Source: Macrostomum lignano
Lineage: Eukaryota
NCBI GenBank assembly: GCA_002269645.1
Contig: NIVC01001428.1
Location: 1-54,814, forward strand
Length of the DNA stretch: 54,814 nt
Direction of reading: 5' to 3'
Shown here: positions 1,815-36,769 of the stretch, one piece after another
How positions within the stretch are numbered: the first letter of the stretch is position 1
Layout of the letters: each line of letters starts with the position of its first letter
The notes under the pieces: generated by a model
Databases searched by the model: none
Told to the model about the DNA's origin: nothing
What the model saw: the letters and a program-made list of their open reading frames with translations, nothing else
Position numbers and translations under genes: made by a program

Positions 1815-3343
1815 CATCTACGGTCACCTTTTAAAGTGCCGAAGCTCTGGCGAACAGGCGAAAGAATTGTCGTGATATCAGCAGTTCGTCTACCTCCGCT
1901 GTTTGGTTTTCGACCTTCACGAGGATCTGCGGCGTCGCAGTGGGTTTGGCTGGACTGCCTTTCGTTCTATGAGGGCAGTCCTGCAGTCCGAGGCCCTACC
2001 GCCAGAGCGCTCCATCTAGGCAGTGGCTGACGTTGATAGCTCGTAGACTCAGTCGAACAGCAATTTGACGACAAGCTTCAAGATCGGCGTACATCGAATT
2101 TGTTGCTTTTGTTTGTGCTATTTTCTACTTTCATCCACAGCCGACTGGCGCTCCTTCTATCGCTTCCGAACGGAGCCCCAGTCTGCCTATGAATTATACT
2201 CGTAGAAAACGCCTTCTGGTATAGGAGGAGTAAAATGAATTTCCAATCTAGCCGTGACATTTTTGCTTTGAATCTCTTTGCTTCCTGTTTCGTGGCTTTA
2301 GGCCGGCTACGATGTTCATTAAAGCCATTCAAATGCAATGGAAGCCTTAGGTGTCTCCCATCTGCTGCTTGGGTAGGAAAATGCATGTTATGTCGCCAAC
2401 AGCAAAGGTATATACGTCACTTTAGTCATTCGCGAGGCATCAAAAGTTGGGCTACTGTGAAGTTCCACTTCGTTTAGCCTTCGTTTAGGCTTCGTTTAGG
2501 CAATAACACAGGCAATTCTATTGCCTATGCATGCTTGCTCACAATTTTCCAATTAGCCGGCAACTCTGACAAAGAAATTAGCTCGTATAAGCATACGCTT
2601 TCCACTGAATTACCTAGCATATGCATAGAACGCTCTTACACTAATTAGATAAGTCATTTACTGTAACCGTGACAAAATTTTCGCGAATGATGTCCTGGGC
2701 CCCACAAAGCTTCAGGACTGGACAAATATATCTATAGAAAATAATTTGCACCAAAAAGTTTTCTGTGGCAACGGGCAGCGGTGTGAAGCCGGCTGAGGGA
2801 ATCTCTGCTGAGTAAACAAACTGGTTTCCTCCCAAATTTCCTTTGTCGGATCGCGAGCAAACTCATGACGCCTGACTGGATAGCTGACACACTCTGAACC
2901 TCAGCAAACATAAAGTTTTAACCTGCTGGCCCTACAGTCCTTCATTTGACACAGACAGTTGGTTTGTTCTAGAGTCCGCTTGCTAACTTGCCGAGATTCG
3001 GAACTTTACTTTGCATTCCGTTACAACCGCACGGCCCTCACTAGGCGTTTCGTCGACTGCCTGTTGGCTGACGCTGGCGCCCCGGATTCGGCCGGCGGCG
3101 CGGCTTTCATTCGCGACCTGGCCTTGAGGCGTGCCCTGTGACTTGTTGTTATTCTGTTATTGTTGTTGTTATTCCCAAAGTTTAACGACTGTTGGGGTAA
3201 ACTGATAATTTGAAGGTCCTTGTGATGGTTTAACTAAGATTTTAAGATCCAATGGTCTTTATACTCGTATAATCGACAGTCTCAGACAGTTTCATTAATT
3301 GGCATACCTAATGAGTTGCACAATATTCTGAAAGGATTTTTAG

Positions 3344-4968
3344 GATTCCACTAATCAGGAGATACAACTAAAGGTGTGGCTGCTATTGGTAAGCTCATAA
3401 AATGTTGTCTTTGAAGCTTCCCTACAGAGCTTTGATGCTAGCTGCAATTCATGTTGTTATTCCAGCACTGGACCGACAGTCGCTTGGCCTGGAAAGGAAA
3501 GTTCAACTCCAGTCTGGACCATATCCACGCAATTACCCTTCCAGCATCGTACCTGTGGCAACCTGACGCATCTCTTTACGATGTGTGAGCCAATTCTCCT
3601 TGAAGTTGAATTGCTGCTCCTTTCAGAAAGTAACAAACTGGTTAATTACTAAAATATTTTTTTCATTAAAACAATTCAATCTAGAGTTGAGCTCTTGGAT
3701 GCCACGAAAGGCCGCGCGATACTCTCTGTGATGTCTTCAGGCATTGTGCTACAGAGCACCGGAATGACTGTCCACCAAGTGCAGCATGCAAATGCAGATG
3801 TTTCCGTTTGACAAGCAAAACTGCTTAGTCAGGCTCTCGAGTCTGCAGCAAGTCACGGGATCGACTCGAATCCGCATCAAGTCCCTGAATGAGAATGATA
3901 CACCGACTGGGTACGTCATGAAGAGCAGCGAGTTCTGCATTCTGTGGGTCCGGTTAGAAAACGGGTCGTTTGGCTTCTATGACACAGCCGAGCTCCGGGT
4001 CGGATTTCAGGTGAGTTTTTGTCCGAAATTTGGTAGTACGAGTAATTCGTGGGATAATGTTAACAGCCAGAAAATAATGGACCAGGATTTGTAATTGCAG
4101 CGACTTTCGAATTTCTACATGATAAACCTGATGCTGCCCTGCATTCTTCTCTTTGGAGTTTCCGCGCTCGCCTTCTGCCTGCCTCCCGAGTGTGGCGAGC
4201 GAGTCTCCTTCAGCATCACCATCGTGCTGTCCATGTGCGTGTTCCTGCAGTTGGTCGGCAACTACACGCCCACACAGAGCGAGTCCGTGCCGTTTATCAG
4301 TGAGTTCCTCGAAGTATCTGCATCACTTCATTGCCTTGGAGCAATTGATCCGAATTTGACACTTACCCCACATTCCAGCCTGGTACTTCAGCTTGGCCGT
4401 GATCATGACAGTTGTAAATGTGCTCTGCAACGCATTTGTTCTCAACTGTCACTTCAGGCAGGAGAGCAGCGTCAGCAGTCGGGTCGTCCGTGCACTCTTC
4501 CTCAACAGATTCTTTGTCGGAGAAAACTCCGAGCGGACAGTCACACGCACCGCAGCCGATGCGGATGGCAAACTATCGGCATCTCAGACTTCCAACGCCA
4601 TTTTTGTAAATAATGGATGGAAGACTGTCGGATCTTCCGCTGATCGGGTGTTCTTCAAATTATTTATCAGCTTCGGAGTCGCAATGATGGTCGTGCCGTT
4701 TGCTATTTTCTGTGTAAAATCTAACACTAACTCTGCCTGGGCGATCTCTAGGATCCAATGGAACTTAGGAATAACTATGATCTCAGTTTTTATATCTAAC
4801 GTACGAACTACATCCAATTCTGTCAAAATGTCGGGAAAAAAGAAAAGGAAAGGGAAAAAGCGGCTGGCAAGTAACGTTGACTCCTGTAATCCTATTTTCC
4901 TAAACAGTAATATTTTCTGCTCTTGTTACACTAGCTTTATTAATACCAGCTCGCATTGCAAAAACTAA
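3344..4968 (+). pseudogene. Cys-loop ligand-gated ion channel, nAChR-like, copy 1 (frameshifted as assembled; 5' exon not located)
   Basis: GT-AG exons: 3344-3388 (45 nt, DSTNQEIQLKVWLLL), 3466-3584 (119 nt, HWTDSRLAW..WQPDASLYD), 3685-4010 (Cys-loop CSMQMQMFPFDKQNC), 4101-4299 (M1-M2, PPECGERVSFSITIVL), 4379-4968 (M3, M4). Exon 3685-4010 is 326 nt and changes frame near 3765-3770. Confidence 0.8.
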
Positions 4969-5799
4969 AATGCGAGAGTAGCTGAGCGCCTTTAGATCAG
5001 CCAAGAACTCCGTATGTCACTGATTGCGGCAGTGTCAATTTATCACCTTATTCGTCGGTGATGGAGCAATAGTTTTTTAACTCAAAATTTGACGATTAGA
5101 CAAAGCTTTGTTTATACTCGTACACCTCGAATAGAAAAGGCATATTCAAAACCTGTTGTTCCTGTATTCAGATTATTTTGCAAATTTAGCTCTAAGAGAG
5201 AATACTTTCCAAATTACAACAAAAATTATACTTCTACTAGCTGGTATCTACGTTGGTATTTTATGCCGGTTAATGATATTTTATCAACAAAATAAAATAG
5301 GAAAGCTGGATCGTCAGCACTTGTGATGAACTCGGTGGCATTCGGCAAGCTGAGCCAACACCTCAAGCCTAGAAATCCGAGAGGAAATCCGAGTAGCCTA
5401 AAGCTGCCATGTACATTCCTGTGGACTGGCTAATGTACATTATTGCTGAACCAATCAGCAAGTTGTTTACGCATGCAAACTTGGGCTTTTAAACTTAGCA
5501 AAGTCGTTTCAGCTGCCTTTATTTATATAAAATAGCTTATGTATTCCTCTTTGCTACTGAATTGAAAGTAGAAAGCTGTTTTACTACGTATATATGCCTG
5601 AGTGGCCCATCCAGTCATTTTAGTATCTGTGGCGCAGATGAAGACAGGGAAGCAGGAAAACCTTTACAATAAAAGAGCGAAAATGACAGTGAATACAATT
5701 CAGAGACTTGTTACCTGCACATTATTTCGAGACAGCAAGGTTAATTTGAGCAGAAAAACCAAATGCCATTTATTCATGCAGGAGACTCTGCATATCGAC

Positions 5800-5945
5800 A
5801 GCAAAATTATATTTGCACAGCATACAGTGAGGTCTATAGCTTGTGAGTCAGTTCACTCAACCACAGGACATAGCAAAATTATATTTGCAGAGCATACAGT
5901 GAGGTCTATAGCTTGTGAGTCAGTTCACTCAACCACAGGATATAG
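5800..5945. repeat. Tandem duplication, 2 x 72 bp
   Basis: AGCAAAATTATATTTGCA..CAACCACAGGA starts at 5800 and again at 5872. Confidence 0.9.
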
Positions 5946-6136
5946 CTGCTGAGTCTGCTCGAACTCTCTAATCAGCTAATTGAGTCGGGTAAATACGATA
6001 ATTTTAGGCAAAGCAAATACTGGACCGATCGTGTTTGCACAATTAATGCGGGGTTAGGACTGTACATTGGTGGTAAACTGATCCCTACTTTATACTCGTA
6101 TTTGTGCTCACCGCCATCAGTCCGACACTGTCCGCC

Positions 6137-9100
6137 ATGTTTTTTCTCACTAGCCTCATCGTATCCTTCGCTGCTCTGCTTGCTGCTTCAACCGCTGAAG
6201 TTGCCAATGACGTCTCACAGGACGCTGCCGTGATGGCGGCGCTAAAGCTGGGCACCGAGTACAACAGGGCGGTCCGGCCGCCCCCGGACAACGGCACCGC
6301 AAACACTGTGAACTTGTTCATCTTTCTGTACAGCCTCGCCAAAGTGGTGAGTTGATCTTCGTTGTTGCTCTTCCGGACATGAATTTACAGCAAGTATCCA
6401 CTGAATGTTTCAGAACTCTGCGTCTCAGGAGGTGACACTGCAGTTTTTACTCGGGAAGGTAACTACAGAAGATAATTTGTTTTAATAATACTGTGTACTA
6501 AAACCAGGAAATCCGGAGATTTTAGTTTCAAGTCGCATGACCAAGACGTTATTTTCACTCGTAATTCGTGATCGCGAGGCGATTCGAAGTTGTCTAAGTG
6601 ATGGGTTCAGCCTTCTATAGCCTTTGATCGGAGACTTCTTGGGCCTCGGAGTGCAGAAATTAATCACTGAGCACTCTCTCCCGTCAGACGGTCAGTCAGC
6701 CCCAGGTAGCGAAGATACAAGCGGCTGGGTCCCCGATAGCTAAGAGAGGACAGCGAGAGACAAGCAGGGAGAATTGGAAAAAAAAGTTGAAATCAGCTAA
6801 TGCAGAGATCAAACTAAACCCGCTGCCACCAACCCGCTGCCTCTGGAAATCGGGTTTCCGACTAGAAGGGGCTCTGAGACAACCTGAGAACCGGTTTCTT
6901 TTTTGCTGCCAACCTCGAAGTCATAGCGGCTTCAATAGGCAGTGAGTTGCAAGTGTACTTGTATGCGCTAGTCGCTAGAGCGGGGGTTGGGAGTTGCTAT
7001 TTCACAGTATGTACGTGCTTTCCACTCACCATCTGTCTCTATCGTCTATACCCAATTATTCAACAATCGTTGTAGTCGTATTTAACCTGCGTATCGATCT
7101 AATAAACGCCAAGCAGCTTCGTCAACTCTCAGTCGTACAGTATCTCTCTCTGACCATGCAGGGACAGTGTGGGCTTTTGCCGAGGGGTTCTGGCGATTCT
7201 CTATGCACCAATGAATGCTCAATTAATACTCAGCAATAGCCAAAAGTTCCACCCTCCAAGCGATATGAAAATTTTATCACTTATTGCGACAACTTCTCAC
7301 TCACAGTTCAAACCTCAAGTTACGCCACTACTCGTGGGCCGCCGCGAGGAAGGGAAAATAACAGTTTACTTTTTATGAAATACGCAGTTAGAATCGCATT
7401 GCTTAATAACGCATGCGAGATCCCCTCGCACGCAGAAGTGCGGTGACTCTTCGGGGCGTCCTTTGTAAGCTGCAGCCAAGCCTTTTCAGTGGTATGGCGC
7501 AGCTCCACAACATTCTGTGGTGGATAACCCTTTTCGAATGCTGCATTTTAGGAAGTCCCAGACATGCTCGATGGGATTCATGTCTGGGGACCGGGAAGGC
7601 CAGCGCAGAGTGCGCAGCTGTAGCTGTTCTTTCAGTTGACTGACACCATCGGCTTGGTGTGGCAGCGCGTTGTCATCCTGGACATTTAAGGAGACTCAAG
7701 CCACCCCAAGTGGCAATAAGCTTTGCGCGTGCCTTAAGTTGCGTCGCTCGCAAAGTGGAAAAAATTAATCTCGCTTGGAGGGTGGAACTTTCGACTGTTG
7801 CTGAGTATATCTCTTGCTCGCTTTTGGCCTGAAATTTGTCCACTGGTCTGTAAATGGTGCTGATGGCAGAACTATCAGAGCCTTCAAGAGATCCCTAGAC
7901 TAACTCTGAATGATTCCTTCCTGCTGCTTTGCCGCCTGGGACAGCACAAAAGTACACCCCTGGCAAATGGTTTGCCTGATTTCGGAATCTGACTGATTGA
8001 TAGGTTAAGTGAAAGGAGGCTGCAATGCTTCGTTCTGCTGCGACATTCGACTCAATAAATTACAGCCACTCATCGTGGCTAGCAAGGCTAAAAAGAAAGA
8101 TCGAACTCTTAAAAGAGAGAGATGCGATCTGGTTTTTCTCCTAAATCCACACTTCTTTGAAATTGTGTTGGAGTAAATAAGTAATTATTCCCAGCACATG
8201 AAAGCAAATAACTAAAAGTGCAAAGGGCTCGGAAAACAAGTGCGCTCCGATAGAGCAGGTCAAGAAAGCTTCTCAGCCAATCAGAGTTTCAAGCTGCTGG
8301 TGGCCAAGAAATCCACTGTGACAAAGACAGCAGGGTGCTGCTGCTGCTCTAAGATGATTTAGATCCAGGGAGTCTAAAGCTTGCAGAGGACTTTTCATCA
8401 GCGTGAACCCGGCGCTTTCGGGGTACTTAGCTGCAGCGTCTCGAGCGGGCATATGCACGGTGGTTTATCCAACCCGGTTATCAGACCGACAGCCGGATAA
8501 ACAACGTTTTCGAGAGGTAGGCCGGCCTTGAATATCCTTCCAGTGGCCAAATTGTTATACCAAGCGTCGAATTTTCTGATTGGACGAGCCCGGAATGACT
8601 AGCTTGATTTTGATTGGCTGAGCTTTCAGACCCTGAAAATCCTCTGCACCGGGCGACCTCTTAGACACCATAGGAACTTGACAGGTGCGGTCATAAATTT
8701 AAAAAGCACGGAAAAATCCAACTAAAAATACCTCGGCTAAAGATCCTGGCCCCAAAGTAACAATATTTTTTGTGTGGAACAACCAGTCGATTGAGTTAGG
8801 ATAGAAAGTCCTAACGGGGATCAGAATTGGCGGGTCCTATGAAGCCAAAATTAGACAGGTACTGGATTGTAGATCAAAATCGACCTATCAGTACAGCTGG
8901 TCTTTCGGTATTTTCTTTTCTTCTAGCATCAGAACAATTCTCGTATCTTTACGAGCAACACGAATTCACATGTACATGTCGAAATTCTCTGTAAATTTCT
9001 GTAGCATTGGTTCGATTCGCGACTGGTGTGGAATTCAACGCCTAATCGGACATTGGACACCACCATTCCCCTCTGGGTTCCGCCTCAAATGGTTTGGACA

Positions 9101-12100
9101 CCTGCTATTACAGTCGACACTGTGTGAGTTGACGAAAGTTTTTTAACCTGTTGACATCATCAAAGTAAAAATGTGCTTCGAACTTCGAACGCAGAGTGGA
9201 GATGAAGCATGTTGTACTGGACGAGTCGCCTGTTTCGATCAGTGCAGCTGGATGGCTTCGTCATAGTACTGTGCTTCTCGTGACCTTCAAATGTCAAATG
9301 CAAATGCACCTGTTTCCTTTCGACAGTCAGATGTGTGGCGTTAGCATCCGGTCTCAAACACCTGCCACCACGGCGCTCAACTTACTTTTTGACAAACAAT
9401 ATTCTGTCGAAAGATACTTGTCAAAGAGCAACGAATTCTGCATCAAGAAGGTTTTCCTAAAGAAATTTAATATAGATGCTCTAACTGCGCCGATGCTTCT
9501 GCTTACGTTTCAGGTAAGAAAAATCGTAAAACAGTAAAAAATCTATGTACGAGCTGTAAATAATCAGCGGTCGCAGTGCGTCACCACAGTGCAGCAGTGT
9601 GTACCATGACCTTTGTGCCCGCTGGGCACTTATTCTTGCCTTTTAATGCCATAAACTACATTTAAGCCCGCTTGTAGGAGTCAAACTTACTTTAATGCAA
9701 ATTAGCGGGCAGTTAATAGTACATTAATACCCATGCTTTAAGGGCGTTAATGGGAAAATCAGAGGGCGCCGTTAGGCACCCGAGGATTTCTCATTAACGC
9801 CCGCAAAGCATGGGTATTACTATCATTGTGCCATAGACATTTGTGTCCTTGACAAAGTGGGACAAAATTAGCGGGCAGTTAATGTATTAACTGCCCGCTA
9901 ATTTGCATTAGAGTAAGTTTGAAATAGACAATCGGGCGTTAAATGTCATTGACTGCCCGCTAATTTGCATTAGAGTAAGTGTGACTCGTGCAAGCGGGCT
10001 TAAATGTAGTTTATGGCATTAAAAGGCAAGAATAAGTGCCCAGCGGGCACAAAGGTCATGGTACAATGACATTAACTGCCCGCTAATTTTGTCCCACTTT
10101 GTCAAGTACTATTGGTTTTGTCAGCCTAACTGAGAATAAAGCCATCCAAAGTGAGAATCCTGCCTACGCTGACTGCGAAGGGCCTGGCTGCGTGCAGCCT
10201 TAGTCTATGGGCCATAGACTATAAAGGACAAGCAAAGTGATAAAAAGCCATCCAATGTGAGAATCGATTGGTCTATGCGTCGTATTCTTTTATTTTGCTT
10301 GTCCTTTATAGTCTATGGCTCATAGACTAGGCTGCACGCAGCCAGGCCCTTCGCAGTCAGCGTAGGCAGGATTCTCACTTTGGATGGCTTTTTATCACTT
10401 TGCTTGTCCTTTATAGTCCATGGCTCATAGACTAAGGCTGCACGCAGCCAGGCCCTTCGCAGTCAGCGTAGGCAGGATTCTCACTTTGGATGGCTTTATT
10501 CTCAGTTAGGCTGACAAAACCAATATTAGACAATAATATCATAATATTATCTAAGAGTTTAAACATTCAGCGGACCATAAAACCATAGAAAACCATAGAA
10601 AACCTAGATTGATTCGTATAGATGAAATTCAATTTTTCAAATTCTATTTTCGATGGCTAAAACTGAATTTAAACAGTTCAATTCAGACTTTAAACTCACA
10701 ATCACTGTGACTAAAATGTCAGAACACATGTGTGCTCAATCAGACGTTTTCACAGGCCAAACAACGGGGTAGGAAGCGCAGTGTGTAAGCTGAGCAAACC
10801 AGTCTAGGCTGCATTCTTGGCAACCATGATGGCATCCACAACTGACTCCGCAATTCTCTGCAGTACCATGAGACGCCAATCCTGTATTAGATTTCGTCTG
10901 GTGGACTCTCGCTTCGTTTGCAGAGTGGGTGCGACTTGTCTGAATTTAACTGCACTGTGTCTTAAATTCAGGGTTCTGCCTGCGCCCGAGCGATGGGCCA
11001 TAGACGTTTTGACCAATAGAGGAAAGTACGTGTAGAAACTTTAGTTAAATATAATTGACAGGGTCTTGAAATAAATTCTCGAATTCATAAACAAAACAAA
11101 AAATGCTATACATGCAGTACTCATAAATATTGTCGTAACCCGCGTCGTTTTGGGTTCCCAGTCCCGAGTAAAATATATTATACGTAATATAACAGGCGTA
11201 GTGACGCTCTGTCTGTACTTTTATGGATACGAGCAGGCGTGCGACGCCCTGCGATAATAGTTCGATCCCTCTGGTGTTGTGACACTCAGAGTTCACACTG
11301 CGGCTCGAGGTGTGGTGACACTCTCGAGTGCTTCTAGTTTCGATACTGTAGGTTGTACACACTATATAAAGTAACCGGTACAGTACTACAATAATACACA
11401 ATATACTATACGCTGCTGTGCTGCAGTGGTCACAGTCGCAGGCGTGATGACGCTCTAGCTATGGAACCACTGCTACGGCAAGGCCTCAGAAAAGCTAAAG
11501 AAGCGAATGAACTCGGGGTTCTACCGGTGCCAGAAGCTGTGAGGCTCGTTCGAATATCGCTACCACTTGACCGCTTTATTTGCTCGCAATCAATTGAGTC
11601 CTCGCAGTAAGAGACCGTCTAGACACGGCTCGCTTGAGTATCACATGCAAAATTAGGAGACTTCGCAGTAAGACACCGTCTTTACGACTCGCTTGAGTAT
11701 CGCTAGGTTAGTTTGAAGAGCTAGGCGAGGGGAGTGGAGCGGAGTGCGGCCAGCTGGCTGGGCCAGGCTTGAGCACTGTATACCACTTAACAGGGTAGAG
11801 GGGCAGACAGCGTGAGAGAGAGAAACGCCAAACAAAAGAAATGAACTCTCAGCCAATCAGCGTGCCCGCCGAGCAGATCTGACTGAAGAGGGGCTTGAAA
11901 AGAAAAACACAAAAACACAAGCCCAGCCAATCAGTGGCCGCTGCGGGGAAAGACTCCAGCCGGACAGAGCGCCCCCCCCCCAACCAGCCAGAACTGGTCT
12001 GGGGATGGCCGCCTAGGGCGCACGCAAAAACAACTAAAAAATTGCAAGAGCACTCAACAGACCAGACATCACAATATACGAGCGTATTTTAAATATATAA

Positions 12101-12925
12101 ATAAATTACATATATAATTAAATATATAACTAAAAATAAATAATATAATATGAAAATATGAAGGCCAACATCACGGACTACTTAAGTATAAACGACAATT
12201 AAGTAGTCCGTGGCCAACATATGCGTATGGTTATTTTCAGAGACGGGTGGCGTTCTACGTGACGAACCTGCTCTTTCCGAGCATCCTCCTGCTCGCCATC
12301 TCCGCACTCGCATTCCGAATGCCTCCAGACTGCGGCGAGCGAGTCTCCTTCAGCATCACCATCGTGCTGTCCATGTGCGTGTTCCTGCAGCTGGCTGGCA
12401 ACTACACGCCCACGCAGAGCGAGTCCGTGCCGCTCATCAGTGAGTCGCGAGATGGTCATTGTGCTGACCGAATCTCTGTACATGTATGCTTATGCGGTCA
12501 CAATTTCCGTTGCAGCTTGGTACTTCAGCATCGCAGTATTGATGACAATTCTGAACGTGCTGTGCAATGCATTCGTGCTGAGGTGTCACTCCAAGCAGCA
12601 TAAAAATGCTTACGTCAGCAACCGGCTGATCCGTGCTCTGTTCCTTAACCGACTCGTGACTGGGAGGAAGCCACAGGTGGATGCTGCACAAGATACAGCT
12701 GACCAGTCTGAGGGCTCTGATGGAGCCATCCCGCCAAGTCCCCTAACAACGACCAATGAGTGCAGCATTGTTGTAGCGTCAGCCGACAAAGTGTTCTTTG
12801 CGATGAACATCTTCGTCACTGTGCTTACAGTCATAGTCACGAGTGCATTTGCAGTCAGTGCGTATTCGAACAATTGCATTGAAGGAACCTTCTCTTCGTT
12901 GGTTGATTTGGTCAAAGACGAATGA
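6137..12925 (+). CDS. Cys-loop ligand-gated ion channel, nAChR-like, copy 2 (intact, 433 aa)
   Basis: Exons 6137-6346, 6414-6458, 9005-9123, 9195-9513, 12241-12439, 12516-12925 join to 1302 nt with no internal stop and all GT-AG. Signal peptide, YNRAVRPP, WFDSRLVW, Cys-loop CQMQMHLFPFDSQMC, PPDCGER-M2, SESVPLI, ADK-M4. Confidence 0.92.
7229..7805 (-). mobile_element. Internally deleted Tc1-family (DD34E) DNA transposon in intron 2 of LGIC copy 2
   Basis: About 35-bp TIRs (CTCAGCAATAGCCAAAAGTTCCACCCTCCAAGCGA) with TA on both sides. Minus strand about 7410-7690 encodes QDDNALPH..WPSRSPDMNPIEHVW with 34 residues between D and E, then a frameshifted C-terminus. Confidence 0.85.
9600..10107. mobile_element. 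Foldback/MITE-like element with about 115-bp inverted arms
   Basis: 9600-9715 is the near reverse complement of about 9951-10065. A second inverted pair lies at about 9845-9885 and 10069-10107. No clear TSD. Confidence 0.7.
10110..10525. mobile_element. MITE with TA ends and a duplicated right arm
   Basis: TATTGGTTTTGTCAGCCTAACTGAG.. is inverted at ..CTCAGTTAGGCTGACAAAACCAATA. An approximately 100-bp right-arm segment occurs twice (about 10294-10390 and 10399-10497). Confidence 0.75.
11131..12073 (-). mobile_element. Solo LTR (943 bp) related to the LTRs of the gypsy element at 28477-38566
   Basis: TG..CA termini on the minus strand and 4-bp TSD ATAT (11127-11130, 12074-12077). The 3' third is clearly homologous to 29170-29414 (e.g. 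AGAAGCACTCGAGAGTGTCACCACACCTCGAGCCGCAG). Confidence 0.88.
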
Positions 12926-14520
12926 ATGAAGAGAAACGTGATAACGTGATGCTACGGTGCGCCTGTGCACCATGAGCTTATCAGTAGTGACTGAACTTTT
13001 GCTATCGATAGCTTTCATCTTAAATTTCTAATATCTTGCGTAGTCTCGAAATAAAACTGAAAGGTTTGTGTACTTTATACGAGCGTAAATGGTTGATAGC
13101 AATCAGACTTTCGGTAACTACTATAACTTAACTTAACATTACAATTATCTTAATTCAAACGGTTCTACACAAAATTCTGAAGATATGGCTTGGGATAGTG
13201 TTTGGAAGACTTGCGATCTTGAATGCTGGAACTTTGCTACGATTATGTTTCTTCTATTCAATGGATGGATGTTTCGCTTGCATAGATAAAGTTTTAATTC
13301 TTTTATCTGTGGCAGGGTGCGCATCGCCACCTACTGCTTTTTGGAATTCACTCGAAAACCCTGCGATTTTCTCGGAACTATTGTAAGCCAGAGTATTTTC
13401 GAAATATTAGTTGTAGCCCATTCTCGATTCGCGAGCCTTTACTTTTTACTTTACTTTTTACTTTACTTTCGATTCGCGTCACTTTTGCAGAAATTTTCTC
13501 TGAGGTTGATGCACTTGATCGGGAAACCCGCGCGTCTAGTTGATCCCAAATGCTTGGCCTCACCAATGCGAATTTACCCTTTGTTTGATAGACTTGCGGA
13601 CCCCGTATTATAAACTCTGTATTGTCTTGTGATCAGTAATAACAGTCTTTTACTGTGAAGACTCAATTTATTACATGCTAGGGTTAAGCTAAAGTTTTTT
13701 GTCATAGTCAGAGGTTTCGGCATGTTCGATTATAGTTTTTCCTATCTTTCAGCGCTTCTCCCTTTTGCTCACTTCCTCGCACTGAACGCAACGTTTTTTT
13801 GACTCACCTACCCTGTTCGTTAAAACAGTTTAATACTTATCTCATCCCTGTACTTCGTTTACTTCACCTAATTTTTTGATGCCCGTTTTCGCTCTTTGAG
13901 CATTGCGTTATACGAGTAGCGATTAATTTTTTTCGTGCAAGATACTCGGTATTATGATATCTAATATTTCAACGTTAAGACGGTAGAGGGGTTCTTTGTT
14001 TTTATTGGAATGTGCTCATGCCAAGAAAGCTGGTATGGTTTGAGGAGTAAAGTTTTTGTTTATACCATTGTACGTCTGTACTATACTACTCTCACTCGTA
14101 ATCGCCTAGTGCACCGGCCTATTCAACTTCAAGCCACCTTTCTCAGCTCCCACTTTCTAATTTTTTATAACGTACGAGCGTAAATTGCAAATTATGCAAA
14201 CTTATCAACCCAGGCTAAAGCCTGTGTCAACCCCGCCTTTTATAAAATTGAGAATCAATACGTACCTGGCACAAGACTCAAGTGTGCTCAACTCGAGTAT
14301 CTTGCTTTGTGTAGCTACTATTGGCAATGCGGCGCTAGCGCCAAGTGTTAAGTTCTCTATTCTTCATATTCTCTTGTTAACACAGTAAATAAGGCTTTTC
14401 GTGACAATGCAAACAACAGAATATTGCTATTGAATTAGAGTTTATTCATACACGCTATAAAACCCATTGGCTCAAGTTGTTCCCTCATGATGTGTCGCAA
14501 TCAGTCAAACTCCGTCCGTC

Positions 14521-16939
14521 ATGGTTCCTACCAGTTGCCTCATTGTCTCCTTCGCTGCTCTGCTCGCTGCTTCAACCGCTAAAGCTGCCAATGAAGCCTC
14601 GCCGGACGCTGCTGTGATGGCGGCACTGAAGCTCGGCAACGAGTACAGCAGGGCGGTCCGGCCGCCCCCGGACAACGGCACCGCAAACACTGTGACCTTG
14701 TTCATCTTTCTGTTCAGCCTCGTCAAAGTGGTGAGTTGATATTTGCTATAGCTCTTCAAGACATTGATTTAATCAGCAGTAGTCTTTGTCAACTTCGCAG
14801 GACTCAGCGTCTCAGGAGGTGACACTGCAGTTTTCTCTCTCGAAGGTCAGTACTTGCTTATATCAATTAAAATAGAGCGATATTTTGTCGAATTGGTTTC
14901 ATTAAGAAAAGAACCAGCTAAAAGCTTTTAAAACCTCATCGTAGCAATGGTTCGACTCTCGACTATCATGGCTGACGAAGCCAAATTCGTCATTCGGCGG
15001 AGTGCGGAGAATATCGGTTCCCTCAAAAATGGTCTGGATAGCTGGTCTTACTTTCGACAATGTGTGAGTTGATGTCCCCTGTCTTTTGCCATCTCGCAGC
15101 AATTTATTAATTATGTTTCCCAATCTATTACAGGCTGGGAATAAAGGACCTTTCACTGGACGAGCCACCTGTTTCAATTTTTATCAATGGATTGGTTCAC
15201 CACCAGAAAGAGCTGCTCGTCACGTTTAAGTGTCAGATGGAGATGCAATATTTTCCGTTTGACAGTCAGAAATGCGGCATTAGCATCCGGTCTCAAAATT
15301 TACCTCACGAGACAATGCTGAAAACAAATTTCAACAGAGACTTTCCTACGGAAAAATACTTGTCAAGGAACAACGAATTCTGCATCAAGAGAATCTTTCT
15401 GGAGAAGCATCGATTGGATTTAGTTGATGCAGCTATTCTTGCGCTTAAATTTCAGGTAAGAGAAAAAAATGTGCACGATAATTTCTAAGGATGATTTCGT
15501 AATATTTATACACACACTTGCTACTGGGCAGAGCAGCTCAACGGTCTGACTCTCGCATCATGACCCTGGTTCGATTCCGTGCGAGGCCATATTCATTTGG
15601 GGCTTTTGTGTACTTAAATTATCCAAAGGCTTTCGTGCGATTCACCCCTATGAGATTATGATTATTATTTCAGCTCGTATTTGCTAGGCTGAGGCATTCT
15701 ATACCACTTTTTCTCTTTAGCCTCTGCTTAAGCCTTACGGAACTTCAGGCCTCTTTCAAACTATAGAACCTTTTTCGACATGAAATACGCGTTTTTAGCC
15801 CACCCATTAGAGCAGGATTTGCGCCTTGATGCATGGACTGTTTCTGCGTTGCATGTTTCTCTAACCGGTTTGCTCGGAAGCCGAGCTTCTTGCTCCCAAT
15901 TGAAATCACCTTGAGTATGATTATCAATTTATTGAATTTGATCTAATCAATACGAGCGTAAATGCAAACAAAAAATAGTTTACATCAATGTACCGTTTGA
16001 TTGTGTCTTTAGCGCCTGTGCATGATGCTAAACTTCCCGTGGACTGACCGTTTCACACGTGTTCATAAAGCCTCGGTAGTCTTTTGCTCCGAGGCTCATA
16101 CGCTTATGAACACGTGTTCACGTTCATGTTACGTGAACACATGAACACGTTATGAACACGTTTATGAACACGTGTTCATAAAGCCTCGGTAGTCTTTTGA
16201 ACGTAACAATTAGACAGATCAACCTAAAAGTGTTATTGCATTGCTTCTCTTAAGAGACGGTCGGCGTTCTACGTGACGAACCTGCTCTTTCCGAGCATCC
16301 TCCTGCTCGCCATCTCCGCACTCGCATTCCGAATGCCTCCAGACTGCGGCGAGCGAGTCTCCTTCAGCATCACCATCGTGCTGTCCATGTGCGTGTTCCT
16401 GCAGCTGGCTGGCAACTACACACCGACACAGAGCGAGTCCGTGCCGCTCATCAGTGAGTCGCGAGATGGTCGTTGTGCTGACCGAATCTCTGTACATGTA
16501 TGCTTATGCGGTCACAATTTCCGTTGCAGCTTGGTACTTCAGCATCGCAGTAGTGATGACAATTCTGAACGTGCTGTGCAATGCATTCGTGCTGAGGTGT
16601 CACTCCAAGCAGCACAACAGCGCTCACGTCAGCAACCGGCTGATCCGTGCTCTGTTCCTCAACCGACTCGTGACTGGGAGGAAGCCACAGGTGGATGCTG
16701 CACAAGATACAGCTGACCAGTCTGAGGTCTCTGATGGAGACATCCCGCCAAGTCCCCTAACAACGACCAATGAGTGCAGCATTGTTGTAGCGTCAGCCGA
16801 CAAAGTGTTCTTTGCGATGAACATCTTCGTCACTGTGCTTACAGTCATAGTCACGAGTGCATTTGCAGTCAGTGCGTATTCGAACAATTGCATTGAAGGA
16901 ACCTTCTCTTCGTTGGTTGATTTGGTCAAAGAGGGGTAA
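14521..16939 (+). CDS. Cys-loop ligand-gated ion channel, nAChR-like, copy 3 (intact, 434 aa)
   Basis: Exons 14521-14730, 14801-14845, 14945-15063, 15134-15455, 16255-16453, 16530-16939 join to 1305 nt in frame. Exon sizes and phases match copy 2 except that exon 4 is one codon longer. Confidence 0.9.
15520..15600 (+). mobile_element. Degenerate tRNA-derived SINE remnant in intron 4 of copy 3 (counterpart at about 20900-20980 in copy 4)
   Basis: GAGCAGCTCA..GGTTCGATTCC A/B-box-like motifs at the same intronic position in both paralogs. Confidence 0.45.
16055..16199. repeat. 32-bp direct repeat bracketing ATGAACACGT palindromic sub-repeats
   Basis: ACACGTGTTCATAAAGCCTCGGTAGTCTTTTG at 16055-16086 and 16168-16199. 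Confidence 0.8.
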
Positions 16940-18616
16940 TTTCATTGTGTTTCAATGCTATTAAGCACCAGTGCAGAAATACGAGCGTATTTTGCTATCG
17001 CTAGCAAAGGTGGTCAGGATTTTAAGTAAATAAATAATCTTTCCACTCGTTGAAAACTAAAAAGTGACATGGCAAAATCTAATGCTGAAAAAATCAGTCT
17101 TGTTCCGCTTTCAAGATCTCGGAGGCGTCTTGGGAAAGAGAAAGAGCTAGTTTCTCAGCGATGCACTGACAGTACATTGACAGACATCAATGGCAGAGAA
17201 ACGATTTGAAGAATGGGTAGATGCTTTAGTATTTATATTTAGGGCAGCTTTGCATGATTAATGCTCGACCCTATCAGAATTCTTTTAGTGGGAGCGGAAA
17301 ACTTGAGAATTGAGAATTTCTTTAAAAATGATAAGGTTTTGGAATTTAACTCAAGATGCACGTGAAACTTTTCGTGTATTTTTTGTACGCTTGTACGCTC
17401 GTAAAATGAAGAAAGATGTTGCCTAGTTCCGCTTCTCAGTGACATCTTTGTCACGCTCATTTGAAAATTTGTAACGGATTCAAGTTTGACTGATCTCGTT
17501 TTCTATTACTTGTCCATATCGTACCTCATTTTGGTGAAAATTTCGCATCATATTCGTAGTTACCTCGTAGTTTTTTATGGGACTCGGTAGCTGCCCATGG
17601 ACTGACGGGATGAATTTTGATTATGTTCGTGTGCCAGGATACTTTTCGTCGATGCTGCCTCGCAACAAGTACATTAAAAAATGGAGGTTCAATTACTGGT
17701 TTTTTAACTGATCCTGATCCATGACAGTTTATTTGACGATGCCATTAATTACGAGCTAATTGGTTATGCTGGATGCGGTACATGCAGAGGTCCACAGCCT
17801 ATAAACGCGCGACAAGCGCTCTCAGTAAAAAAACTAACGAAAGCAGATTTAAATCTTGCGTAGAAAATCATGCAGTAAAACAAAAACCTAAAAATGTTTC
17901 AACGAAACGGAAAAAATAACTCCAGAAAGTTAACTAGCAAGCTTCTACCCCCCGTCAGGGAGGCAATAAAGAATGGAATAAATGTTTTGAATAATCTACA
18001 TGTAGCCTTTGAGCTTGTAGAGTCACTGTTGTTAGTTTCTGGAGGAAAATGATGTTTAAAGCAAAACAGCATCAGCCCTGAAAGCCAGCTGTGTAGCCTA
18101 AGATATCAGCTCCCCTTTTTGAGCTTTGGCTCTGAGCAACTCCCTCACACTAAGCTCGTAATGTGTTATCATTTATTCAGCTGATAGTTATTTTACACAA
18201 TTGGAAAACAAAAATACCAGAAACAACTCTTGAAGTTTCGCTTTCCGCTAAAACATACGTGTTACCCACGGGTGCAACTTGCATTTTGTAGAAAATTATT
18301 CCGCCGAATCGCATCTCGCCGAAAAGCATTTTTCCGACATGCACTCTCAGTTCGTCGAAGCAAAATATGAAAATTTGAAGTGTCTCATTTCGCTGAAACG
18401 CATCTCGCCGAAGTTTTCAAAGGCGTGTTACGAGCTAATAGGTCATAAGACGCCACCAATTTTTACAGATTATCCACTAGTTCAGAGGATTATTCAGTAG
18501 GTTCTGATTCAACGCGTGATACGGTACACCAAACGGTTATTAAATCAGTCACGAATCCGATTGTTGTACTTCTAAGTAACTGTAACTGTCTCTGTTAACC
18601 ACCCATGGACAATATA

Positions 18617-19207
18617 GCATTTTGCGTTGCACTTAAGCTTACGGGCAAATCACTTAATCCTAAGTGGCAGAATTACACTGGCGAGGGCAGCTGCCGATCG
18701 ATTCTATGGTCTCAACTGGTGGCTAATGGGCAATTTACTTTAGCCTTAGGGTACAGACTTAATCCATTCATGCTCTATCGCAGTTTGAAACGCTTTCAAT
18801 CGGCCGCCCAGTGGGTGGTGCTGTGGCAAGGGCATAATTTTAATCGGTCAATATGAGCAACATATGAGCAAATGAGCAAAGTATGAGCAAATGAGGGAAC
18901 ATCGGCAGGTGGTTGGTTGGCCATAACAAAGTGGGAAAGTAAACAACAGCAGCTGCAACACAGTTCTGGCAATGAGCCAAAATGAGCAAAACATGGACCA
19001 TGTTGAGCTCATTTTGCTGCGAGCCTTAGCTTCTAGTTCGCTTTTATAGAGCATGAATGGATTAAGTCAGTGCCCCAAGGCTTAAGTAACTTGCCCGCCA
19101 GCCAACGGTTTGGGCCATAGACTTGATCGGCAGCTGCCCTCGCCAGTGTAATCCTGCCACTTAGGATCAAGTGATTTGCCCGTAAGCTTAAGTGCAACGC
19201 AAAATGC
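18617..19207. mobile_element. Non-autonomous element with about 160-bp imperfect TIRs
   Basis: GCATTTTGCGTTGCACTTAAGCTTACGGGCAAATCAC.. is inverted at 19040-19207. Internal ATGAGCAA repeats. TSD not evident. Confidence 0.7.
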
Positions 19208-19890
19208 AAAGTGCAACGCAAAAGCAAAATGCAAAATGCCAGAAATATACTTGAAAATCCCCCCTAGTCTCTGAGTTGTGCGAATAGTTTTCCCACAGAT
19301 ATAAAATACTTGGCAATATTGGTGCAGGACAACTTAATCAGCATTCAGCACTTTTACTCATTCCCTTTAAAATTCGGCAAATAAGTTTAGACAGAATGAG
19401 GCACACGTGTTACTCACTTTTGTCTGAAGCCTGATGGCGTCTCATATTTGCGCTTTGCGTGCGCTAATTAATATAATTGCATTTTTCTCTGCTTTCGGAG
19501 GCGAACACGAGAAGGATACTTAATCAAACAGTGCAAATGCACAATCGAATTACTTTGTTTAACTCAACAAATTTTAGCATGATTCAGCTGAAAATAGTTA
19601 ACAATTAAACCTTATTCAGGAAGCAAGTTTTTATCTCCTAAATAATTCATGTTTAACCAGCATTTTGGGCTTCAGTCAACAACTAATTTCACTAAACTGC
19701 AGCAATTCGCTAATTGCATCAATCAATCTTGGCAATGAAGCTAATGGAGTCAGTAAATAAAGCTTTTCTTGACAAGGCAAACAACAGAACATTGCTTGCT
19801 GAATAAACAATTGTCGATACACGCGATAAAATCCATTCGTACAGCATTTCACTCATTGTATCTGTCACACCCAGCCACGCTCCGTCCGTC

Positions 19891-22297
19891 ATGGTTCCAA
19901 CCAGTTGCCTCATCGTCTCCTTCGCTGCTCTGCTCGCTGCTTCAACCGCTGAAGCTGCCAATGAAGCTTCGCCGGACGCTGCTCTGATGGCGGCGCTGAA
20001 GCTCGGAACCGATTACAACAGGGAGGTCCGGCCGCCCCCGGACAGCGGTACCGCAAACACTGTACACTTGTTGATCTTTCTATACAGCCTCATCAAAGTG
20101 GTGAGTTGATATTTGCTATAGCTCTTCAAGACATCGATTTAATCATTACTAGTCTTTGTCGATCTTGCAGGACTCTGCGTCTCAGGAGGTTACACTGCAG
20201 TTTATGCTTTTGAAGGTCAGTACTTGCTTACATTGATTAAGGGGGAGCGATGTTTTGTCTAAGTGGATTTCATTACGAAAAGAACCTGCTAGAAGCTTTT
20301 CAAAACCTCATCGTAGCAATGGTTCGATTCTCGACTATCATGGATGGCAATGTCTAATTCAGCATTCGGCGGAGTGCACAACATATCCGTTCCTTCAAAA
20401 TTGTTGTGGATACCTGATGTTACTGTTGACACTTTGTGAGTTGAGGCCCCGTTTCTGTCGCCCGCCATCTCGCAGCAGTTTATAATGCTTTTTCCCCATG
20501 TCTTACAGGATGGAGATAAAGGATGTTACCCTGGACGAGCCACCTGCTTTAATTTTTATCGATGGATTTGTTCAACACCAGAAAGTGCTGCTCGTCACGT
20601 TCAAGTGTCAGATGGAGATGCAATATTTTCCGTTTGACAGTCAGAAATGCGGCATTAGCATCCGGCCTCAAAATTTACCGCACGAGACAATGTTGAAGAT
20701 TCTTTTTCTACAAAACTTTTCTACAGAAAAATACTTGGCAAGGAACAACTAATTCTGCATCAAGAGAATCTTTCTGGAAAAGCATCGACTGGACGTACTT
20801 GATGCGGTTATTCTTGTGCTTAAATTTCAGGCAAGAAAGAATCACGTGCACTTTATTTTCTAACGAACTATTTCGTACTTTTATTACATTTACTTGCTAC
20901 AGAGCAGCTCAGAGGTAAATGTGTTGACTCTCACGACATGACGCCTGTGTGTTCGATTCCGTACGTGGCCACATTCATTTGGCTTGTGCACGAAAATTAA
21001 CCGAAGTTTTTCGTGCCATTCAAACCTGTTAGGGCCAACATCCAAGGCACCGAGAATGCACCTTGCCTGACGACTAGAAAGTCAGAATCGCTGTACAGCC
21101 TGGGTGAGCTTGTATGAGTGCGTGCCTGTGTACAGTAGTAAAATTTCCTCAGTGCTTGTGGGACAATGTCATTGAAGGCTTTGCGCCAGGGCGCCCGCAG
21201 CCCTCTTTCAACCTATAGATACTAATTCGACAAGAAATACACATTTTAGCCCACCCATTACAGCCGAAGGGAGGAAGGACCTTGATGAACTGTTTCTGAG
21301 TTGCATGTTTACTTGCTCGAAATAATATTTCTTGCGATCGGTTTGGTACGAAGGCCTCGCTTCTCGTTCCTAATTGAAATCCTTTCAAGTAGGACTACAA
21401 CTTTGTTGGATTTGATCAAATAATTAATACAAACACAAATTAGTTCAATTTTATGCATGTACCGTGTGCTCATGGCTTTAGAGACAGCTCAAGCTGCTAA
21501 AATTAGCATTGAACAGATCGTTTTGCGAGTTCAAAAAGCCTTGGTAGCATTTAAAATGAAACAATTTGGACAGATCGATCTGAAAATATGTTATTTCATT
21601 GCTTCTTTTAAGAGACGGTCGGCGTTCTACGTGACGAATCTGCTCTTTCCGAGCATCCTCCTGCTCGCCATCTCCGCACTCGCATTCCGAATGCCTCCAG
21701 ACTGCGGTGAGCGAGTCTCCTTCAGCATCACCATCGTGCTGTCCATGTGCGTGTTCCTGCAGCTGGCTGGCAACTACACACCGACACAGAGCGAGTCCGT
21801 GCCGCTCATCAGTGAGTCGCGAGATGGTCGTTGTGCTGACCGAATCTCTGTACATGTATGCTTATGCGGTCACAATTTCCGTTGCAGCTTGGTACTTCAG
21901 CATCGCAGTAGTGATGACAATTCTGAACGTGCTGTGCAATGCATTCGTGCTGAGGTGTCACTCCAAGCAGCACAACAGCGCTCACGTCAGCAACCGGCTG
22001 ATCCGTGCTCTGTTCCTCAACCGACTCGTGACTGGGAGGAAGCCACAGGTGCATGCTGCACAAGATACAGCTGACCAGTCTGAGGGCTCTGATGGAGACA
22101 TCCCGCCAAGTCCCCTAACAACGACCAATGAGTGCAGCATTGTTGTAGCGTCAGCCGACAAAGTGTTCTTTGCGATGAACATCTTCGTCACTGTGCTTAC
22201 AGTCATAGTCACGAGTGCATTTGCAGCCAGTGCGTATTCGAACAATTGCATTGAAGGAACCTTCTCTTCGTTGGTTGATTTGGTCAAAGACGAATGA
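19891..22297 (+). pseudogene. Cys-loop ligand-gated ion channel, nAChR-like, copy 4 (nonsense codon in exon 4)
   Basis: Exons 19891-20100, 20171-20215, 20317-20435, 20509-20830, 21613-21811, 21888-22297. TAA at 20750-20752 where paralogs have Glu (N/S-E-F-C). Intron 4 donor is GC (20831). Confidence 0.85.
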
Positions 22298-23593: not shown

Positions 23594-25800
23594 CATTGAT
23601 TGCGGAGTGCGGCTCCTTCAGATGGGGACCCAATCGAGGGCACCCAGGAGCCGCGCCACCAAGTGACCATCGGCAAGGTCGTTTAGGTTATAAACTCCAA
23701 ACAAGCGGCGTGTCGAAGCCAAGGCATCCAAGCCGCGGCCGCATGCCAAGCGACGGACTCGACGACCGCCTTGTAGACAGTGCGGAGGGTGTCACAGTCC
23801 CAGCCCCACTCTCTGTTGGCCAGGGCGCGGAAGATGCTGCATCGGCGGTGCAACTTAGAAACAACTTCGGCCGTCTGGCACTTGAAGGTCAGGCCACCGT
23901 CAATCCAGACGCCGAGGTATCGTACCTCACGCTTGGTAGGGAGACGAGTGCCAGAAATCGACAGGTTTAGAGGGCGATTTCGCTCGCTCCGATCGCGCGT
24001 GTACAGACAGCACTCAGACTTGGAGGGGTTTAGGTCGATTCTCAGGTCGGCAGCCCAGTTTTCAATGCGGTTTAGCGCAGTCTGAATGCGAAATTCCAGC
24101 TCGTTAGTGTTCCGACCGGTAGTCCAAATGCCGAGGTCGTCAGCGAATCCCCCGTAGCAGACCTGGGGGACCAGTTTGTCCCGCCAGTCGTTGATGTACA
24201 GGAGAAACAGAATAGGAGAGCTGACGGCCCCCTAGGGCACCCCCTCGCGGAGGGGCCGCCACTTGCCGACCTCCTCACCGACACGCACAGCGATTTGACG
24301 CCCTTCCATGAAGCTGGCGAACCAGCGAATAAAGCGACCGGGCAGGCCTTCGTCCATAAGACGAGCCAAAAGCTTTGCCCGCCAAACCCGGTCGAACGCC
24401 CTTGAGCAATCGAGCGTGACGGCCAACGTCTTGAGGTGGGGCCTTCTTTCCCATCCGTCCTGGATTTCTTGCACGAGGCGAGCTATTTGTTCCTCGCAGC
24501 TCCGGCCGCGTTGAAATCCCGCTTGCCAGGGCTGCAGAGTGCCGTTGGTCTTGAGCCTATGCATCAGCCGGTCAGCACCATCCGCTCCATGAGCTTGACG
24601 CAGATGGACGTAAGGCTGACGGGCCGGAAACTGGAGCAGTCTTTGACTGACATTTCTGTAGCGCTCCCCAGCCGCACCAAATTTTTGAGTACGTGCCCCA
24701 GAGGATATTTGGGGTCTTTGGTCTTCAGTCTTCAGTCTTTGGGGTCTTTTTCGTCTTTAAGGAGAGGCACGATGATGGCCTTTTTCCAGACTCCAGGACA
24801 GTGGCCAAGGCTCCAGCAGCGGTTGAACACCTTGAGCCAGGCCAACTGCCAAGTTGTCGGCAGATTTTTAAGGAAGGCCGTTTCAATGTCATCTGGGCCA
24901 CACTTTTTGGTGACATCCAGCTTGCATAAGGCACGCTGAAGTTCCCCAAGGGAGAACTGGCTTTCGTGGTTGGTGTTGCCCAGGGCCTATTTGCGGTCTC
25001 GACCTTAAAGGCGCGGTCACGGGCATCATGTTTGAGAGAGCTACGAGCTAATAGACACATAGAAACGCCCAAAGGCGTTAGCCTTTTCCAGGTCCGTGCG
25101 GTGTTCGCGATTGTTAACAACGATGTTCTCGTTTTTCGCCGTGCTCTTATCCCCAGTCTCCAGTATCTTGATGGTGCGCCAAATCTTCTTAGGGTCGGAT
25201 GAGGAGGAAAGGTCCTGGACGTAGGATTTCCAGAACTCCTGCTTCTTTTCCGCACAGCGCTTATTGAGCTCCGCATTTTTGTTGCGCCAGGCATCAGGAT
25301 CGCCCAGGCTTCTGAGACAATTTTTTTCCTCGCGAATGTGAGAAAGCTCCGCATCCCAGTACGGTTTTTGATTTCCACCGACTTTCTTGAGCGGGATGCT
25401 GGCGCTGGCGGCCTTGGACATTCTCTTACAGAGACGGTCAATTTGCTCTTTAATAGTACCCTTGTTGAGTCCATCGCTCCACTCCTCGAGCCTGTCCTGG
25501 TAGCTGTTCCAGTCAGCTTTCTGCCAGGCCCAGGTGAGGCGGGGGCGCCGGTCAAGGGTTTGACAGTCGGTGTTGAGCGTGATCAAAATAGGTTTCTGGT
25601 CAGACCCCAGCTCGTTGAGCGTCTCCCAGGTGCAATGATCAGCAACACTAGCACTGGCAAGGCTGAGGTCAGGCACGCTCTGCCCTCCGGTGCGACGATC
25701 AAGGCACGTTGGGCGCCGGTGTTCAGGAGCACCGATGTTGTTGGTGCTGATGGCGTCGGGGTTGATAACGGAATCTTTGAGAGACTAGATGAGGATGTCT
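23538..25800 (-). mobile_element. Degenerate non-LTR retrotransposon (LINE, probably I/Ingi/Nimb-like): APE end, RT and thumb, 5'-truncated
   Basis: Minus strand: APE C-terminus (PDLSLAS..GSDQKPI), RT (LDCSRAFDRV, GVP, FADD), thumb (YLGVWID..WGWD..LRTVY). Several frameshifts. Ends in an (AAC)n tail. Clade assignment is tentative. Confidence 0.85.
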
Positions 25801-29414: not shown

Positions 29415-29417
29415 AAT

Positions 29418-36735: not shown

Positions 36736-36769
36736 TGGGGTCAAGCTTCCTGGGGGAATGGCTCAGCAG

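Follow-up and report, generated by a model that had tools for sequence, protein, structure and literature searches.

A tandem array of Cys-loop receptor genes in the flatworm Macrostomum lignano with a homogenised pore half, divergent ligand-binding domains and a lost acetylcholine signature

Cephalopod chemotactile receptors have been described as derived from nicotinic acetylcholine receptors (nAChRs), insensitive to acetylcholine and clustered in tandem (PMC11526382, PMC10338036); strong diversifying selection has been reported for sites in their pocket (PMC11526382). Orphan nAChR-like genes of lophotrochozoans form lineage-specific tandem expansions with divergent ligand-binding domains (PMC6896357, PMC10338036), and the 2019 survey of such expansions did not include flatworms (PMC6896357). 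Orphan nAChR-like expansions that lack an acetylcholine site are already known in animals related to the one considered here. We describe four homologous Cys-loop receptor genes in the flatworm Macrostomum lignano, which lie in tandem and all on the + strand between positions 3344 and 22297 of contig NIVC01001428.1 (GenBank assembly GCA_002269645.1). The contig was analysed over its stretch of 54,814 nucleotides (nt), hereafter the window. An earlier note, written from the bare sequence, had described a tandem array of nAChR-derived channels without the acetylcholine-binding signature and proposed them as chemosensory receptors. Six-frame translation, tblastn with a hand-built model as the query, and splice models built from the DNA demonstrate that the array is real and that two of its four copies are disabled, which that note had not noticed. 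No fifth copy of the family was found by tblastn elsewhere in the window. The genes are arranged as follows.

3344..4968, + strand: copy 1, pseudogene-like, frameshifted and without exon 1 (exon 2 3344-3388, exon 3 3466-3584, exon 4 3685-4010, exon 5 4101-4299, exon 6 4379-4968)
6137..12925, + strand: copy 2, intact, 433 amino acids, open frame with all junctions GT-AG (exons 6137-6346, 6414-6458, 9005-9123, 9195-9513, 12241-12439, 12516-12925)
14521..16939, + strand: copy 3, intact, 434 amino acids, all junctions GT-AG (exons 14521-14730, 14801-14845, which is the 45-nt microexon, 14945-15063, 15134-15455, 16255-16453, 16530-16939)
19891..22297, + strand: copy 4, structured as copy 3 and disabled in the assembly (exons 19891-20100, 20171-20215, 20317-20435, 20509-20830, 21613-21811, 21888-22297)

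The intact copies share an architecture of six exons, the second of which is the microexon; vertebrate nAChR genes possess a microexon at the same position. Full-length subunits can be encoded in this assembly by copies 2 and 3 only. We favour the reading, to which we assign a probability of roughly 0.45, that such subunits assemble among themselves as orphan cation channels and that their pocket, which varies between paralogs, would respond to a cue different from acetylcholine.

The genes belong to the Cys-loop, or pentameric ligand-gated ion channel (pLGIC), superfamily, with Pfam matches to Neur_chan_LBD (1.7e-26) and Neur_chan_memb (1.6e-21); in copy 2 the ligand-binding and transmembrane domains are matched at 2.9e-27 and 2.2e-20. 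The diagnostic motifs are located at the following positions, M1 to M4 denoting the transmembrane helices.

3780-3824, + strand: Cys-loop C-x13-C of copy 1, CSMQMQMFPFDKQNC
9292-9336, + strand: Cys-loop C-x13-C of copy 2, CQMQMHLFPFDSQMC
15231-15275, + strand: Cys-loop C-x13-C of copy 3, CQMEMQYFPFDSQKC
20606-20650, + strand: Cys-loop C-x13-C of copy 4, peptide identical to that of copy 3
15231..15311, + strand: Cys-loop and loop B of copy 3, CQMEMQYFPFDSQKC GISIRSQNLPHE
3780-3860, 9292-9372 and 20606-20686, + strand: equivalents of Cys-loop and loop B in the other copies
16336..16416, + strand: M1-M2 linker and pore-lining M2 of copy 3, PPDCGERVSFSITIVLSMCVFLQLAGN
4182-4262, 12322-12402 and 21694-21774, + strand: equivalents of M1-M2 linker and M2 in the other copies

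The C-x13-C Cys-loop and the cation-type linker PP[D/E]CGER, both of which the earlier note had read in every copy, are confirmed. The M1-M2 motif PP[D/E]CGERVSFSITIVLSMCVFLQL starts at 4182, 12322, 16336 and 21694 and places Glu at -1', Arg at 0' and Leu at 9'. All copies display the cation-selective signature PP[D/E]CGERVSFSITIVL, with the -1' Glu and no extra Pro (G-E-[KR] instead of P-A-R), and the top sequence matches among solved structures are cationic receptors only. The genes clearly belong to the cation-selective branch (nAChR, 5-HT3 or ZAC type). Vertebrate 5-HT3A is the top solved-structure match (E 6e-35) and shares the 0' Arg and the PPD(S/C)GERVSF sequence at the start of the M1-M2 linker and M2, the GERVSF stretch of the copies being identical to mouse 5-HT3A in the alignment. 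The loop-B Trp of 5-HT3A (FTSWLH), in contrast, is absent here. Apart from the pore, the intact subunits retain the signal peptide, the FPFD of the Cys-loop, the pre-M1 Arg and the M2-M3 Pro. The AlphaFold2 model of the paralog P0005 has a mean predicted local distance difference test score of 84.7 and displays a complete beta-sandwich followed by M1-M4. Foldseek places alpha7 and muscle nAChR chains as the best matches of this model with 5-HT3A close behind, all at a template modelling (TM) score of about 0.7. Between the end of M3 and the start of M4 copy 3 has only about 63 amino acids, in line with the very short M3-M4 loop described before, and the only helices that the P0005 model forms there are short ones, post-M3 and MA-M4.

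The conserved gating and pore residues stand against a pocket that is largely dismantled. Loop B reads SSLQQ, RSQT, RSQN and RPQN in copies 1 to 4, respectively, and contains Trp in none of them, as previously noted; loop C falls about nine residues short of its length in nAChR alpha-9/10-like relatives and contains neither the CC nor the YxCC..Y whose absence had been claimed. The two marks of an alpha subunit, the loop-B Trp and the vicinal Cys-Cys of loop C, are missing not only from all four copies but from all M. lignano units of the family. In copies 2-4 the alignment reveals non-aromatic or absent residues at all four positions of the aromatic box: the loop-A Tyr is replaced by Asp, the loop-B Trp by Gln, the loop-D Trp by Leu (copy 2), Ser (copy 3) or Met (copy 4), and the Tyr residues of loop C are missing along with the CC. 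The loss of the acetylcholine-binding signature, stated earlier for the array as a whole, is thus complete in these three copies. The minus face is affected as well, as copies 2-4 lack the equivalent of gamma W55, i.e., the loop-D Trp, which is retained by the disabled copy 1 and the paralogs P0003 and P0008b only; the loop-A Tyr persists in copy 1, P0003 and P0004. A serotonin box is not apparent either, with no aromatic residue in loop B at the position of 5-HT3 W183. Because the aromatic-box positions are lost, neither face of copies 2-4 is predicted to form a canonical acetylcholine site. The binding loops are also the least conserved parts of the family: identity within the family is 0.18 in loop B, compared to 0.49 among alpha-9/10-like nAChR comparators, and 0.23 in loop F, compared to 0.76 in M2.

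However, several observations weigh against the reading of self-assembling channels opened by another cue. Ordinary non-alpha nAChR subunits normally lack the loop-B Trp and CC as well, and the muscle epsilon chains in the PDB read FPFDWQNCSLIFRSQTY (FRSQTY), sharing RSQT with copy 2. The copy-1 type has both the loop-A Tyr and the loop-D Trp, as a complementary subunit does. The database search found no annotated protein that corresponds to copy 2, and the open frames of copies 2 and 3 would not as such prove expression. The relaxed constraint, combined with the fact that two of the four copies are dead, could signal a decaying family, and the restriction to M. lignano may stem from poor sampling of macrostomorphan proteomes. 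Furthermore, the loop-B Trp is missing in 49 of 174 related units, which include proteins of bivalves, hemichordates, a tardigrade and nematodes as well as vertebrate 5-HT3-like paralogues. A channel need not be non-cholinergic just because it lacks the loop-B Trp and CC. The non-cholinergic function suggested in the earlier note gains from the additional loss of the loop-A and loop-D aromatic residues in copies 2-4, while the two features on which it had been founded are equally absent from muscle epsilon.

We therefore also have to consider that the genes encode ordinary non-alpha subunits, structural or complementary, which join canonical flatworm alpha subunits in acetylcholine-gated receptors of muscle or neurons. 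In both sequence and structure the best matches include muscle beta, gamma, delta and epsilon chains, and the muscle non-alpha subunits (epsilon, gamma, delta, beta1) resemble the Macrostomum genes in lacking the vicinal Cys and the loop-B Trp (FRSQTY in epsilon versus IRSQT and IRSQN here); the pocket residues kept by copy 1, P0003, P0004 and P0008b point in the same direction. Muscle non-alpha subunits nevertheless keep the complementary-face loop-D Trp and long intracellular loops, neither of which is found in copies 2-4, where the loop-A Tyr is lost too, the loop C is about nine residues shorter and the identity to the muscle subunits amounts to only about 22%. The presence of some 12 divergent paralogs whose binding loops are hypervariable and the M3-M4 loop of just about 63 residues likewise disagree with this explanation, and a variable pocket in that many paralogs appears to be more than expected for a silent structural partner. 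The dN/dS ratio near 0.4 reported below is high for synaptic receptor subunits. On this evidence, partnership with canonical alpha subunits is possible but somewhat unlikely.

The contrast between the pore and the ligand-binding half of the genes provides insight into the evolution of the array. Substitution rates at synonymous (dS) and non-synonymous (dN) sites are Nei-Gojobori estimates.

12228..12918, + strand: homogenised 3' tract running from the end of intron 4 through exon 5 and intron 5 into exon 6 (self-BLAST; dS 0.02-0.06)
Exons 3-4 (ligand-binding): dS 0.94 between copies 2 and 3, 0.30 between copies 3 and 4
Exons 5-6 (M1-M4): dS 0.05 between copies 2 and 3, 0.02 between copies 3 and 4

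The tract at 12228-12918 is 97% identical to 16242-16932 and to 21600-22290, and among copies 2-4 the identity of about 97% takes in the final 13-84 nt of intron 4 as well. Exons 3-4 of the same copies, by contrast, are only 67-83% identical in self-BLAST. This pattern of an identical pore and a divergent ligand-binding domain was left by gene conversion or by an exchange of the 3' half that took place very recently. Stronger constraint on the pore is not its source, because it is dS and not dN/dS that differs between the two halves. Copy 2 is a mosaic, as its dS to copy 3 differs strongly between pairs of exons (0.16 in exons 1-2, 0.94 in exons 3-4 and 0.05 in exons 5-6).

The dN/dS ratio ranges from 0.36 to 0.76 across regions and from 0.41 to 0.44 in the ligand-binding exons, where 103 non-synonymous and 52 synonymous differences were compared. 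A ratio near 0.4 indicates that copies 2 and 3 are under purifying selection. Positive selection was considered as the cause of the divergence of the ligand-binding domain and rejected, with the region-wide dN/dS at about 0.4 and the contrast explained by dS. The ratio near 0.4 and the two dead copies fit birth-and-death evolution, a pattern that would be more typical of receptor families facing the environment than of synaptic receptors.

The favoured reading of orphan cation channels combines these observations as follows. The array would turn over by duplication, pseudogenisation and gene conversion. Conversion would keep the M1-M4 half about 97% identical, whereas the ligand-binding exons 3-4 would escape it and diverge under moderate purifying selection. 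With the aromatic residues of the acetylcholine pocket lost and both loop C and the intracellular loop shortened in copies 2-4, the intact subunits would most likely join one another in cation channels whose own interfaces would not respond to acetylcholine. Another ligand or stimulus would then act at the pocket that differs between paralogs.

A chemosensory role, as proposed in the earlier note, is a special case of this reading: the genes would encode ionotropic chemoreceptors of sensory cells in parallel to the cephalopod chemotactile receptors. As in the chemotactile receptors CRT1 and CRB1, we find lineage-specific, tandemly arranged cation pLGICs of a broadly nAChR-like type in which the aromatic box for acetylcholine is not used, and the birth-and-death turnover, the dismantled pocket, the loops variable between paralogs and the intact cation pore all agree with such a role. 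The Macrostomum family differs from the chemotactile receptors, as these have been described, in its restriction to Macrostomum and in the lack of gross positive selection: the overall dN/dS of the ligand-binding exons is 0.41-0.44, whereas strong diversifying selection is reported for chemotactile pocket sites, and the difference between this domain and the pore is already accounted for by gene conversion. In addition, there is no chemotactile receptor among the best named relatives, the genes are rich in introns, and loss of the loop-B Trp is common in pLGIC expansions without an assigned role. We regard sensory-cell chemoreception in particular as unlikely.

Alternatively, the array might be the remnant of a decaying, mostly non-functional family on its way to pseudogenes. 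Two of the four copies are disabled, dN/dS is elevated (0.4-0.76), and transposable elements occur in the long introns of copy 2 and in the flanks. Decay on this scale is very unlikely, as copies 2 and 3 keep open frames of 433-434 codons and have every splice site preserved, the ligand-binding domain, too, has a dN/dS clearly below 1, and the gating and pore residues are conserved, together with a pair of family-specific Cys residues discussed below, across paralogs down to 31% identity.

The extent of the family was assessed by an exhaustive search of a family profile against 1.84 billion representative proteins. The top tier, with 430-690 bits per full-length unit, consists of M. lignano proteins only, in agreement with the lineage-specific family postulated beforehand; it comprises P0001-P0005, three units fused in P0007, three in P0008, P0009 and P0028. 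Family size, which the earlier note had asked for along with a phylogeny, is hence estimated at roughly 12 distinct members. As several members are predicted as fused neighbours, other tandem arrays are implied. The next match, P0041, is likewise from M. lignano, scores 211 bits and still has GSW in loop B. A third tier at 170-200 bits is formed by nAChR alpha-9/10-like proteins of Ptychodera, Pecten and Lingula and by vertebrate 5-HT3A. No orthologue of the family was detected outside Macrostomum in the searched databases, and a word-based search with P0041 returned no flatworm orthologue; the relatives found in the latter search (nAChR alpha10-like, muscle beta and 5-HT3A-like proteins) are about 29% identical. 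We found no published description of this family in the literature on Macrostomum Cys-loop receptors or flatworm orphan pLGICs.

The closest database protein to copy 3 is P0001, an uncharacterised M. lignano entry of UniProt with 95% identity over 90% of copy 3. The two are nearly identical where aligned and share the junctions of exons 3-6.

A neighbour-joining tree without outgroup, computed from a MAFFT alignment of 174 units, unites the family and P0041 as a monophyletic group in 93% of the bootstraps and places it beside the 5-HT3 clade with a bootstrap value of only 13%. Among solved structures, 5-HT3A and nAChR alpha1/beta2 are matched at an equal E-value of about 1e-34, and identity to the nAChR-like and 5-HT3 groups is also equal, reaching about 21% over the extracellular domain and 30-33% over M1-M3 in both. 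A slight lean towards nAChRs is seen in the Foldseek ranking and in the profiles, of which the nAChR-like one scores 259 bits and the 5-HT3 one 197 bits; across the family the nAChR-like profile is ahead by 40-70 bits. Of the derivation from nAChRs claimed earlier, membership in the cationic branch stands, whereas the equal identities and the low bootstrap value do not separate nAChRs from 5-HT3 receptors as the source. Descent from nAChRs appears plausible, and "nAChR-like in the broad sense" would be a fair label.

Compared to the lophotrochozoan expansions, the Macrostomum family has a signature of its own, namely a Cys in beta9, a Cys behind M4 and the short loop C. Expansions in bivalves are mostly intron-poor retrocopies, whereas the Macrostomum genes keep their six exons including the 45-nt microexon. 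Alpo4 of Alvinella retains the aromatic box and lacks only CC, whereas copies 2-4 lack the box itself. In copy 3 the two additional Cys are found here.

15369..15386, + strand: beta9 motif NNEFCI, family-specific, with the extra Cys (C208)
near 16903-16905, + strand, exon 6: post-M4 Cys (C423, in the tail SNNCIEG)

All 11 family units and P0041 carry the beta9 Cys (NEFC), which none of 163 other pLGIC units has. This Cys aligns with V177 of muscle alpha1, two residues past E175, which we take to lie in the beta8-beta9 linker at the interface of the extracellular and membrane domains. The second Cys follows 4-8 residues behind M4 in most full-length members. Both residues would be extracellular, and it is reasonable to propose that they may form a disulfide tethering the tail of M4 to the extracellular domain. 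A parallel with ZAC for a disulfide of the C-terminal tail was considered and dropped, there being no precedent in the ZAC structure paper.

It is conceivable, though quite doubtful in our view, that macrostomid flatworms independently recruited Cys-loop cation channels for cues other than neurotransmitters in convergence with the chemotactile receptors, and that a new beta9/post-M4 disulfide tether may have accompanied this step. If the channels are gated by a cue other than acetylcholine, they would represent a second independent conversion of a neurotransmitter-receptor channel to other cues. Macrostomum lignano is genetically tractable by transgenesis and RNA interference, which makes tests of ligand and cell type feasible. 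Irrespective of the ligand, the locus illustrates that in a tandem receptor array the pore half may undergo gene conversion while the ligand-binding half diverges, and that a missing "alpha signature" alone is no proof of a new function.

The two disabled copies differ in the nature of their defects. Position 3344, at which the earlier note had let the array begin, is exon 2 of copy 1. As exon 1 is missing, this copy has no ATG and no signal peptide. A remnant is nevertheless present farther upstream.

3040..3132, + strand: 5' remnant upstream of copy 1, matching residues 58-88 of P0003 (74% identity, E 7e-11, tblastn)

Residues 89-159 of P0003, which cover the signal peptide, the N-helix and beta1, have no tblastn match anywhere in positions 1-6000 of the window. 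Exon 4 of copy 1 measures 326 nt instead of 322 or 319 nt, and because of this the copy runs into a stop inside the Cys-loop: the frameshift lies between 3768 and 3779, the frame breaks 12 nt ahead of the first Cys of the Cys-loop, and the spliced reading ends with ...DVSV*. Exon 6 has an abnormally long, Lys-rich tail. The frameshift could be an assembly indel; sequencing or assembly errors are less likely for the missing exon and for the substitutions of copy 4.

In copy 4 an in-frame TAA is found at 20750-20752 (...ARNN*FCIKR...), where the other copies have GAA or GAG, and the donor of exon 4 is GC at 20831-20832 in place of the GT of the other copies. The tail of P0001 is a fused fragment resembling copy 4 from elsewhere in M. 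lignano. As this fragment reads NNEFCIKR intact, the stop is specific to the present copy or haplotype.

Upstream homology between copies 3 and 4 (14383-14520 versus 19751-19890) starts only about 138 nt before the ATG, and in copy 2 about 25 nt before it. The duplicated promoter region is very short, and therefore shared regulation, if any, is compact or located elsewhere.

Introns 2 (6459-9004) and 4 (9514-12240) of copy 2 measure 2.5 and 2.7 kb, i.e., 25 and 3.5 times the length of those in copies 3 and 4, and bear repeats: an inverted repeat (9600-9717 and 9948-10065, 96%) and tandem repeats at 9870-10008 and 10294-10497. These are probably insertions of miniature inverted-repeat or other transposable elements.

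Fragments of a non-LTR (long terminal repeat) reverse-transcriptase open reading frame (ORF) on the - strand at 24232-25676 (RVT_1, 4.7e-09) follow directly downstream of the receptor array. A young LTR retrotransposon of the Ty3/Gypsy type occupies 28476-38201, with LTRs at 28476-29049 and 37628-38201 that are 97-100% identical, gag at 29648-30580 and pol at 30490-35277. The N-terminus of its pol ORF contains 25 in-frame copies of a 30-nt repeat (HQ[HP]PVSGTA[SP], 30622-31370). Between pol and the 3' LTR this element unusually harbours a further ORF, which contains a DnaJ domain (35668-36735, Pfam 6.8e-18) and is followed by GC-rich repeats of 20, 81 and 162 nt at 36773-37375. An intact mariner/Tc1-like transposase ORF of 438 amino acids is located at 40356-41672 (Pfam HTH_48, HTH_32, DDE_3 and Transposase_1). 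From 42000 to 50000 the G+C content falls sharply to 29-33% over about 8 kb, compared to 42-61% elsewhere, and no long ORFs are present. Towards its end the window contains a satellite of 20 copies of 23 nt with 96% matches (52298-52755) and an (ACAGGCAG)n-like array with periods of 8, 16 and 32 nt, which extends from 54334 to the window end at 54814.

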